A stretch of DNA of 64,000 nucleotides, from the NCBI RefSeq assembly GCF_003704095.1, contig NW_020845073.1, forward strand, positions 496,001 to 560,000, in the 5' to 3' direction. The notes under the pieces were generated by a model that worked only from the letters and a program-made list of their open reading frames with translations, was not told the DNA's origin and made no database searches. This DNA is from Pocillopora damicornis. Lineage: Eukaryota. The translations under genes were made by a program, and so were the position numbers. Positions 37,491-39,802 of this stretch are shown in pieces (positions within the stretch are counted from its first letter, which is position 1; every line of letters begins with the position of its first letter).

Positions 37491-39802
37491 ATGTCCCGAT
37501 TCTTGGTTCTGCTTCCATCGCTTTTCCCGCTGTTTATGGTATCTGTGGTTCGTGGACGAGGTGGGTCCTCAAACAGTTTTTCTATTCTCTGTTATTAGGC
37601 TAAATTAAATGTGGTTTTATCGAGAAACAAACGCAGAAAAAAATTCTGTTTGTCTGCATTGTCCAAAATTTGATGCAAGTATCAAGGTTTACTTCCCTAG
37701 AAAAAGAAAATAGAGATACTTTCTTTGAAAAATATTGATATTGTGTGCAAACTCGAACTCAATTCGAATTCGAATTCAAACTCGCGAATAAAAAGCAAAG
37801 AAATGCCCGAAACAAAAGCTTCATTTTCTGGTTCAATGTTCTTTGAGTTTTCTTTTTCAGATGAGCCACTTTCGCCTGAAAAGTATCAAAGTCAGATTCG
37901 GGCAGGGTTTTCCACAAACTGGTTTAAGACAGAGAAACCAATGGAAAAGTACTCTGAGCAGAACATCAAAGATGTCCACAAAAAAGGGTTTAGTAACTTA
38001 CGAATTCGATGTAGAGCAGATCAAATTTAATACTTTTTCCTAAAGGTTTTTAGTTTTAATACTGAATCTGAAAGTGAAATGTGCAGTGAGATTCGGTCGA
38101 ATTGTGGCTCATAAAAAACTCCTCTTTTTTTCATGACAATTAGAAAACAAATTGCTCAAATTATTATTTATTTATGAATGAACGACAGCCGAATTCACAG
38201 GAATAGGGGCACACTTCTTTTCTTACCACAAAGCTTGCGTTTTCCTTATCCAAATTGAAGAAAGCCTAATGGTAATGATATTTTTTGTGCCTTCATTGTT
38301 CAGGCAAAACTTTCTCTTGAGCTTCATCGTGATTTCAGCTTGGATTCCTTGTATCACCGCGCTCATTGATTCGGTCGCACCCGCCGGTTTTTCGCCGGTT
38401 GTTCGCGCTTTTTGACCGGTTTATTGAGAATCAGCGAATTGATTTTCAAAGTAAGTGATAAATGTCTAGGTCGCTCTCCTAAACCTAATAAACGGTTATG
38501 CCATAACAGCCATAGAGCACATCTTCGAAGGTTTTAAATCGGTGCCAACCCACTTTAGATGCTAAAAGAACACTCGAAAGTTAAAAAAGCACCCGCCCCA
38601 CGGCTGATGAGAAACGACGTTTCGATGTGTATCTCTTGTCTTCTCAAGGTATTGTATTAAAAATCAATATTGGGGATCGTTGTTTTGCTTGGTGAACGAA
38701 CTCTGAGGCATACTGAACATACAATAACATTCTATCTAATGCTCTCGGTCGATTCAATTTTTTTGCAGTAGTGAACGTGAATAATCCCATTTCTCCGAAA
38801 GAGTACCAAGCTAAGATTCGAGCAGGATTTTCCACAAATTGGTTCAAATCGAAGCCGCCACTGAAAAAATACTCGGAACAGAACATCATAGACGTCCATG
38901 AGAAAGGCTTTAGTAACTTAAGGCTTCGATGCAGGGCAGATCTGTACTCATACAACTTCTCCACCGTCGAATTCAAACGGTTTCTTGGCTCTCTGACGAC
39001 CGTTGTCGACGATTGTCTGAAACACGATGTGATTCCAATTATCTCCTGGATACACCACCACGCAGAAGCCTACGCTACAGAGAAGGATCGTGTCGCCTAT
39101 GTTGGTTGGTGGACATCTGTGGCACGCCAGTTAAAGGACAGGGACTACAGACTGAGTTTCAATCTCTTCACAGAACTTGGAATTGACACTTGTAAAGAGG
39201 AAGGGAAAAGTTGTGACAAAAGTCTTCGCAGGAGAACAGACAAATACAACGAGTGGACAAAAAATGTAACAAAAGCGATTCGAGGTACGGGTGGAAATAA
39301 CACAAAGCGAATACTCATTCTTGGGTCACCAGGAAAAACTGCCAAGGACTTACCTAAAATCGATCCAGAAATTTACAAAAATGATCGATATATGATGGTT
39401 GAATGGCATCTTTATGCTTCAGGGCCAAACAAAGTGAAGGATTCTCAAAAGTATTGGAGTGGTGATGGTAAATCTGGAGGCCGAGCAAATGTCAAAGAAG
39501 CAATTAGCTACGCGACGAGTTTTTCGAACAAGACTGGTCTGCTGACCTATCTTGGTGCTTGGATGCCTCACGATAACGCAAACGGAAGCATAACAGAAAC
39601 TGAAGCCATAAAATTTGCCCGTTTCTTTGTTAAGGAGCTGCGTAAGGAGAACATACCGTGGTCCCTGAACGTTCTGGACAACTATTACGATACCAAGAAA
39701 AGCAAATGGCGGACAGAGACTCAAGTCATCGAAGGTCAGCAGTTAAAGATGGCCAAGATTTTGAACAACATTCGTAAAGAAATGCCAAAGGCTATTTATT
39801 AG
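37491..39802 (+). CDS. Secreted glycoside hydrolase family 5-like (cellulase-fold) protein, intact copy B1
   Basis: Catalytic exon 38769-39802 (acceptor TTTTGCAG, phase 1) with GH5-like motifs GFSNLRLR, PIISWIH, SFNLFTE, AIRGTGGNNTKRILIL, VEWHLY, TYLGAW, IPWSL. The nearest compatible signal-peptide exon is 37491-37560 (MSRFLVLLPSLFPLFMVSVVRGR, phase 1, donor GTGGGT). The catalytic exon is secure; the join to this first exon is inferred. Confidence 0.85.
37861..38030 (+). pseudogene. Truncated GH5-like exon (paralog type A)
   Basis: Acceptor TTTTTCAG at 37860, then DEPLSPEKYQSQIRAGFSTNWFK...GFSNLRIRCRAD. Homology stops at ~38023, where intron-like sequence of the other copies begins; stop at 38030. 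Confidence 0.85.

Follow-up and report, generated by a model that had tools for sequence, protein, structure and literature searches.

A secreted coral protein with a GH5 fold belongs to a large clade in which alanine occupies the site of the catalytic nucleophile

The coral Pocillopora damicornis carries a gene, here called A1, for a secreted protein that folds like the enzymes of glycoside hydrolase family 5 (GH5). The gene lies in a stretch of 64,000 nucleotides (NCBI RefSeq assembly GCF_003704095.1, contig NW_020845073.1, positions 496,001 to 560,000 of the forward strand); this whole stretch is called the window below, and positions are counted from its first nucleotide. The protein has alanine (Ala263) at the site of the catalytic nucleophile on strand beta7, and it keeps the glutamate that serves as acid/base (Glu135). 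Judging from homologue alignments, loss of the nucleophile marks a very large GH5-derived clade and not the array of copies in the window alone. The protein is likely still to be an enzyme, with a non-canonical second catalytic group. Substrate-assisted catalysis is a possible mechanism for the coral protein; it is put forward here tentatively, as the most favoured of those considered.

An earlier note on this DNA, made from the sequence alone, had described a GH5 fold; structure prediction bears this out. The Pfam model PF00150 'Cellulase (GH5)' matches residues 18-298 (E 1.1e-15, 58.3 bits against a cut-off of 23.5). The AlphaFold2 (AF2) model, built on 41 homologues, has a mean predicted local distance difference test score (pLDDT) of 95.3, a predicted template modelling score (pTM) of 0.93 and eight strand-helix units; the strands are at residues 18-25 (beta1), 49-55 (beta2), 88-94 (beta3), 129-131 (beta4), 182-185 (beta5), 208-212 (beta6), 259-264 (beta7) and 297-299 (beta8). 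The top Foldseek matches are all GH5_4 or GH5_25 endoglucanases (TM-score 0.71-0.75, 15-20% identity, E about 1e-15). With the endo-beta-glucanases and xyloglucanases of these subfamilies, such as CelE of C. thermocellum (4im4), the S. copri enzyme (9bjx, 9bmk) and Cel5A of F. nodosum (3nco), the protein shares the (beta/alpha)8 fold at a TM-score of about 0.73. GH5_4 chains are also the best profile matches to the clade in the PDB, with 4im4 at 66 bits; this search of all PDB sequences found no solved structure of the clade, only GH5_4, GH5_25 and similar enzymes.

Motif equivalences were taken from HMMER alignments to solved GH5_4 enzymes (9bmk, 4im4, 6pz7). The GH5 landmarks listed in the earlier note all align. 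GFSNLRLR supplies the beta2 arginine (Arg51), HH95-96 lies opposite the beta3 His-His pair, Glu135 on beta4 matches the acid/base, and beta6 carries the His-x-Tyr pair. AIRGTGGNNTKRILIL lies opposite the GH5_4 stretch IRATGGNNAKRxLIL (shared pattern IRxTGGxNxxRxLIL). The beta3 histidine is lost in the bacterial Ile-Glu clades.

Two residues of the GH5 catalytic machinery have been replaced. Ala263 stands at the nucleophile of the GH5_4 motif G-E-F/W, and Thr134 stands at the asparagine of the Asn-Glu (NE) motif. The earlier note had both changes right, and its codon positions were exact: Glu135 is encoded at 39173-39175 (gaa) and Ala263 at 39557-39559 (gct). In GH5 the lost pair, Asn134 and Glu263, faces O2/C2 and the alpha face of C1 of the -1 sugar. 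In the S. copri GH5_4 enzyme, the residues of this subsite are His151, His152, Asn196, His275, Tyr277 and Trp370 (PMC11418011). The beta8 tryptophan is probably replaced by Leu302, which the HMMER alignment sets opposite this Trp370, adjoining a gap; in the AF2 model, Trp297 lies at the start of beta8. In contrast to GH5_4 enzymes, to which identity is only 15-20%, the coral clade also has the extra invariant or near-invariant residues Arg53, Glu211 and Asn300 and a fixed GAWMP motif. Because it has a signature of its own, the clade is not filed under GH5_4, which merely holds its nearest solved relatives.

The replaced nucleophile is shared by nearly all close relatives. Among the coral protein and 120 close homologues (Hexacorallia, Octocorallia and Mytilus included), GAWM is found in 114 of the 121 sequences. 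Glu135 is present in all 121 and Thr134 in 120, and the motif NLFTE is practically invariant. A profile search of 1.84 billion cluster representatives (clusters at 50% identity) found 1277 proteins at E <= 1e-3, of which 143 reached E <= 1e-30. In the best 150 profile matches the signature is nearly without exception: (N/H)xRxR on beta2, an aromatic residue at 93, x(T/I/V)E on beta4, EWHxYA on beta6, GAWMP on beta7 and P(W/F)xxN on beta8. Position 134 is Ile or Val in bacterial clades.

Many of these matches are prokaryotic. A search of species-representative genomes gave 161 loci, and 80 of these were retained. They come mostly from gut Clostridia (Lachnospiraceae, Oscillospiraceae, Butyricicoccus, Lachnoclostridium phytofermentans); Bacteroidota, Chloroflexota, Nitrospira, Leptospiraceae and Proteobacteria are also represented, and one clade protein comes from a Desulfurococcales archaeon. 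In 75 of 75 bacterial genes the residues His49, Arg51, Arg53, Tyr93, Asp131, Glu135, Glu211, Trp212, His213 and Asn300 are kept; Tyr215 is found in 74 and Asp302 in 72. Ala263 formed part of the pattern used in the bacterial search and is not independent evidence there. Arg51 and Arg53 are invariant in both family alignments as well. Glu211 is replaced by Gln in four distant members, three with Ala263 (P0164, P0241, P0245) and one with Glu263 (P0216).

Ala263 is kept in nearly all distant members, from the Desulfurococcales archaeon to corals; this is explained by selection for the alanine state. The earlier note had held that the alanine is ancestral to the array and not a product of decay. 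Both points stand, and only the scope was too narrow: alanine is ancestral to a clade of bacteria, archaea and animals. No NCBIfam model was found for the clade, and the ESM Atlas gave only generic 'GH5' clusters. Literature searches found no paper on the clade and no characterised member; a paper on CBM96 and GH5 concerns GH5_2.

Glutamate has returned to position 263 repeatedly. In a tree of 200 sequences, Ala263 is ancestral for the entire clade and Glu263 arises at least six times, in P0013, P0032, P0093 with P0106, P0123, P0124 and the bacterial P0216. The sister of each Glu263 lineage is of Ala type, with support of 0.92-0.998 for five lineages and 0.26 for P0032. The fragment P0102, which the tree does not include, has the same motifs as P0032. 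In a seventh case, the fragment P0307, Asn134 is regained as well, and the motifs read NLFNE and AEW; the site can therefore still host canonical catalysis. P0307 was the sole further Glu-type sequence from a second homologue search seeded with Glu-type sequences, and the number of independent contrasts remained at five.

These returns are coupled to position 303. In the animal-type clade of 116 leaves, Asp303 is found in 102 of 107 sequences with Ala263 and in none of six with Glu263; the six have H, E, K, H, E and N. When columns 263 and 303 were left out of the tree, all five independent contrasts agreed that Glu263 goes with replacement of Asp303. In a scan of all columns, 303 was the only strongly conserved site altered in every Glu-type sequence. 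Gly262 has become Ala in four of the six Glu-type sequences. In the bacterial P0216, Glu263 is combined with Gln211. A carboxylate seems to be needed near the old nucleophile site, and the alignments suggest that Asp303, Glu211 or both supply it when position 263 is Ala. The earlier note had named another Asp or Glu at the nucleophile position as a finding that would count against it. This may in part be the case, given the replacement of Asp303 alongside Glu263 and the near-universal Glu211.

A Glu-type paralogue is also present in the coral genome itself (L089, G000:C3188:148617-149639). It reads FAEWMP and SLEKYY and has two in-frame TGA stops. The near-identical P0032 is intact and represents 279 public member sequences.

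Under substrate-assisted catalysis, Glu135 would be the general acid/base and the 2-acetamido group of the substrate would take the role of the nucleophile (neighbouring-group participation, as in GH18, GH20, GH84 and GH85). Gly262-Ala263 and Thr134 would provide room for the acetamido group and for the oxazolinium intermediate. The acetamido group would be polarised by a carboxylate from elsewhere, namely Asp303 in the animal-type clade and Glu211 on beta6 throughout, and Tyr215 would stabilise the intermediate. Likely substrates would be glycans that contain N-acetylhexosamine (HexNAc), such as chitin, peptidoglycan or mucin-type glycans.

The residue pattern of the coral clade resembles that of known substrate-assisted glycosidases, to which it has no sequence relationship. 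Families GH18, GH20, GH56, GH84, GH85 and GH123 are barrel enzymes that have an acid/base carboxylate and no enzymic nucleophile; they use a second carboxylate, or an amide, to orient the 2-acetamido group, with help from a tyrosine. The coral protein likewise has no enzymic nucleophile (Ala263) and keeps its acid/base (Glu135), and its candidates for polarising the acetamido group are the nearly universal Glu211 and Asp303, which covaries with position 263. The change of Glu211 to Gln in a few members fits an orienting role better than that of a covalent nucleophile, by analogy with GH85, where an Asn has the orienting role.

Several observations weigh against substrate-assisted catalysis. 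In the known families the orienting residue is beside the acid/base or two residues before it, on the same strand; here the neighbour of the acid/base is Thr or Ile, not Asp or Asn as in GH20, GH84 and GH123, and the candidates are on beta6 and in the beta8 loop. We infer the placement of Glu211 and Asp303 relative to Glu135 and the nucleophile site from sequence and covariation only. Several bacterial sub-clades, reading AIH, AIQ or ATK, have neither Asp303 nor Asp302. The five concordant contrasts give a sign test p of 0.0625, which is the best value reachable with five. Literature searches found no biochemical data for any member of the clade, and we know of no clan GH-A family that uses substrate-assisted catalysis.

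Gene context adds thin support for a HexNAc substrate. One Firmicute homologue adjoins a GH25 muramidase with a similar fibronectin type III (fn3) tail, and bacterial members carry cell-surface anchors (SLH, Cu_amine_oxidN1, the C-terminal domain of the type IX secretion system (T9SS)). Among the 140 neighbours of the 75 bacterial homologues, however, the HexNAc signal is almost nil (GH25 2/140, Peptidase_S11 2/140). No conserved partner was found among these neighbours, in which two-component systems account for 9/140 and 5/140; the contexts of the archaeal and Bacteroidota genes held nothing informative. In addition, the CBM96/DNRLRE domains on some bacterial members point to other substrates.

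A classical retaining glycosidase with a relocated nucleophile is a rather unlikely alternative and ranks second. Asp303 (in the loop between beta8 and alpha8, animal-type clade) or Glu211 (beta6, universal) would fill the space left by Ala263 and make the covalent bond to the sugar, Glu135 would be the acid/base, and the substrate would not necessarily be N-acetylated. Replacement of Asp303 in every Glu263 lineage, alone among strongly conserved sites, is expected if two carboxylates compete for one site and one role. Glu211 is nearly universal, P0216 has lost it where Glu263 is present, and Gly262-Ala263 would leave space for a side chain from a neighbouring strand. Against this, the three members with both Gln211 and Ala263 (P0164, P0241, P0245) would be left without any nucleophile, and several bacterial sub-clades have neither Asp303 nor Asp302. 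The simultaneous loss of the O2-binding asparagine is left unexplained, and here too the positions of Glu211 and Asp303 are read from alignments. The equivalent glutamate in the S. copri GH5_4 enzyme (VEFHYY) is absent from its list of -1 subsite residues (PMC11418011).

A non-catalytic glycan binder is also an unlikely reading. The protein would then be a pseudo-enzyme whose old GH5 cleft serves as a lectin, much as has been proposed for chi-lectins (GH18), Klotho (GH1) and fungal GH5_30. The nucleophile and the asparagine are gone, and the beta8 tryptophan is probably gone too. The protein is secreted, basic and rich in lysine, as the earlier note had said (38 Lys, isoelectric point 9.6), and its tandem copies turn over rapidly, as in many animal lectin families. 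GH5_30 offers a precedent within GH5 (PMC3526467). Among subfamilies, Aspeborg et al. 2012 name only this fungal one as lacking the machinery; they note further GH5 modules without it and list no cnidarian GH5 (PMC3526467). Like the coral clade, GH5_30 has the GH5 fold, lacks canonical catalytic residues and is mis-annotated, as cellulases or mannanases (PMC3526467). It differs in that all of its essential residues are gone and that it is fungal; the coral clade lacks only the nucleophile, keeps the acid/base and occurs in bacteria, archaea, cnidarians and bivalves.

Conservation argues for an enzyme instead. The active sites of TIM barrels are at the C-terminal ends of the strands, and in the AF2 model the invariant or near-invariant residues Arg51, Arg53, Glu211, His213, Tyr215 and Asn300 are at these ends or just past them. 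Together with the conserved Glu135, this favours an enzyme over a dead lectin. Every sequence examined, from three domains of life, keeps the acid/base, which lectins derived from glycosidases, such as chi-lectins and Klotho, have usually lost. The conserved set consists of residues of catalytic type (Glu, His, Tyr, Arg), beyond aromatic platforms. Constraint is not relaxed: the two intact copies in the window, A1 and A2, differ by a dS of 0.052 and a dN of 0.016 (dN/dS 0.31; synonymous and nonsynonymous divergence) and are under purifying selection. Prokaryotes, in which the loss of the nucleophile is ancient, seldom have such pseudo-enzymes, and the returns to Glu263 bring a specific compensating change, which suggests chemistry over mere binding. 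The earlier note had left the choice between a binder and an enzyme with another mechanism; the invariant acid/base, purifying selection and regained glutamates lean towards the second, and the first is less favoured.

Other chemistry on the GH5 scaffold is quite improbable. This could be anion-dependent cleavage or inverting phosphorolysis, using an anion held by Arg51 and Arg53, or beta-elimination on uronic-acid polymers by Arg, His and Tyr. With Arg51 close by, the extra invariant Arg53 could create a site for an anion, and the coral protein is very basic. Several Bacteroidota members are fused to CBM96/DNRLRE modules, which are reported to bind alginate, but these modules are found in a minority of members, and DNRLRE-type domains are common in unrelated proteins. 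Uronate-pathway genes were not found among the 140 neighbours of the bacterial genes. To our knowledge, secreted phosphorylases are not usual, and clan GH-A barrels do not occur among polysaccharide lyases.

An ordinary two-carboxylate GH5 endoglucanase, as implied by the Pfam Cellulase match, the nearest GH5_4 structures and NCBI names of the type 'cellulase/esterase CelE-like', is all but excluded by alanine at the nucleophile site, at codon level and family-wide, and by loss of the NE asparagine; the warning in the earlier note against assuming a cellulase was well placed. The best PDB match with GAW, 9bmk, derives from a genuine glucanase in which the nucleophile was exchanged by design (E331A); it was rejected as a natural precedent. 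It tops the phmmer list because of the shared G-A-W. The same local G-A-W at beta7 is found in other engineered nucleophile mutants, such as CtCel5E E314A. Unlike these laboratory-inactivated enzymes, the alanine of the coral clade is natural and selected, and its surroundings are co-adapted.

Few glycosidase families are as large or as well studied as GH5, whose two-glutamate mechanism is treated as a family constant. The large, conserved clade with natural alanine, which unites proteins of archaea, gut Clostridia, marine Bacteroidota and reef animals, is either a new catalytic solution in clan GH-A or an unusually old pseudo-enzyme. On either reading, hundreds of 'cellulase' entries in databases are probably misnamed. 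The question is directly testable, as the returns from Ala to Glu with loss of Asp303 are natural mutant pairs. If the clade as a whole has given up the nucleophile for a neighbouring group or a relocated carboxylate, this would be the first such mechanism switch in clan GH-A. For coral biology, the protein would be an abundant secreted enzyme of probable bacterial origin whose substrate may be relevant to feeding, to mucus or to the control of microbes.

Transfer between bacteria and animals is supported by P0121 (L107:7039-9960), a bacterial protein of 973 residues with an animal-type GH5-like domain followed by Big_9, cadherin-like and DUF4114 domains. Over 342 residues this GH5-like domain shares 52% identity with the coral protein, nearly as much as the mussel proteins do (56%). 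The neighbours of P0121 on its contig are of cyanobacterial type (PatA_N, DUF4058). P0121 may represent the donor lineage of an inter-domain transfer, or else a recipient. The Bacteroidota members are multidomain proteins with T9SS sorting domains, CBM96/DNRLRE, fn3 and InlB-type repeats. The full combination is doubtful as a whole: clade-wide loss of the beta7 nucleophile, catalysis by a neighbouring group or by a carboxylate that has moved into the beta8 loop or onto beta6, passage between bacteria and marine animals, and a secreted hydrolase of chitin, peptidoglycan or mucin glycans in corals, anemones and mussels.

RNA contigs show that the coral gene yields a spliced, polyadenylated transcript, and the protein product opens with a signal-peptide-like segment. 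Exon 1 is 70 nucleotides long; its boundary with the intron is a GT donor in phase 1. The joint from 37558 to 38767 is found in polyA RNA contigs of three different studies (X1, X5 and X6); it is of GT..AG type, and the cut can be moved by 2. RNA contigs cover the gene body from 38767 to about 39994. The open reading frame (ORF) at 38771-39802 on the forward strand encodes 343 residues. Homologues from anemones, octocorals and mussels also have signal peptides at their N-termini, and secretion, as proposed in the earlier note, is confirmed by the signal-peptide exon joined in RNA. Coordinates of the gene, its motifs and its copies are given in Table 1.

Table 1. Positions of the GH5-like gene A1, its main motifs and the other family copies in the window
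Feature	Position	Strand	Evidence
Exon 1: start codon and signal peptide MSRFLVLLPSLFPLFMVSVVRGR	37491..37560	+	translation, tblastn with homologue N-termini, RNA contigs
Intron 1, 1208 nucleotides	37561..38768	+	GT..AG joint seen in polyA RNA of three studies
5' remnant of another family copy, inside intron 1	37860-38048	+	tblastn
Exon 2, coding part: entire GH5-like domain to stop codon (intact copy A1)	38769..39802	+	ORF, PF00150, AF2, RNA contigs
Arg51-Leu52-Arg53, beta2; Arg51 is the GH5 beta2 Arg, Arg53 the extra invariant Arg of the clade	38921..38929	+	alignment to 9bmk, 4im4
Thr134-Glu135; Glu135 is the kept acid/base, Thr134 at the Asn of the NE motif	39170..39175	+	alignments
Glu211-Trp-His213-Leu-Tyr215, beta6; His and Tyr are GH5 landmarks, Glu211 the extra, nearly universal carboxylate	39401..39415	+	alignments
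Gly262-Ala263-Trp264-Met265-Pro266; Ala263 at the beta7 nucleophile Glu site	39554..39568	+	alignment to GH5_4 G-E-F/W
Asn300-Val-Leu302-Asp303, directly after beta8; Asn300 invariant, Asp303 covaries with 263	39668..39679	+	alignments, AF2
Decayed copy, several stops	41282..42007	-	tblastn
Frameshifted copy in three frames, with LGAW and VLD	43350..44332	-	ORF, tblastn
Signal exon matching the frameshifted copy	45861-45929	-	tblastn
Two decayed copies or fragments (51497-52378, 52484-53190), with stops, LSAC/AKxH/YALE and an N run between	51497..53190	-	tblastn
Decayed copy with FSAC, broken by N runs	53324..54455	+	ORF, tblastn
Second intact copy A2, 96% protein identity to A1, same motifs	55120..56151	-	ORF, tblastn
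Likely signal exon of A2	~58324-58393	-	tblastn

The window holds about six decayed copies beside A1 and A2, several with three to seven stops. Genome-wide there are two intact copies, both in the window, and one more is probable on another contig; the rest are pseudogenes. The earlier note had reported LGAW in two other copies of the array, which it called B2 and C1, and this motif is seen in the frameshifted copy. It had also reported LSAC and FSAC in further copies, which it called D; LSAC is present in the decayed copy at 51497-52378 and FSAC in that at 54099-54455, but the D copies are pseudogenes with four to seven stops and not intact members. The copy at 53324-54455 is described from the sequence outside its N runs.

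Common to the decayed D copies (51497-54455) are Lys at position 211 (AKWH), SAC where A1 has GAW, and YALE where A1 has NVLD. These copies may represent a divergent type of paralogue that died, and not random decay of the A type.

Loose ends of RNA before 38766 carry the sequence of the likely signal exon of A2. In RNA contigs of runs X6 and X11, exon 1 is joined to the remnant inside intron 1 and continues into an A2-like body; an intact gene with such an N-terminal part is therefore expected in related corals (compare P0002). The arrangement around the remnant looks like the product of unequal crossing-over or insertion.

The closest named proteins are from Pocillopora meandrina (96%), followed by other Anthozoa. 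P0003, a public protein of 421 residues ('unnamed protein product, partial [Pocillopora meandrina]'), combines PF02932, the transmembrane region of ligand-gated ion channels, with PF00150. It looks like a chimeric gene model in which an upstream channel exon (window 34870-35409, forward strand) is fused to the GH5 body; the true signal exon is missed, since RNA shows another exon 1.

The window has the character of an animal genome, with about 38% GC, few ORFs and a reverse transcriptase of the long interspersed nuclear element (LINE) type. Three adjoining ORFs of 137, 391 and 176 residues at 15282-17504 on the reverse strand resemble a retrotransposon without long terminal repeats, with an endonuclease-like part and a broken reverse transcriptase. 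Two further ORFs on the reverse strand, at 158-589 and 9829-10311, encode repeats very rich in Pro, Gly, Tyr and Gln (PGYPxQ units). A short conserved tail follows the repeats in each, and the two ORFs probably belong, as exons, to paralogous genes.

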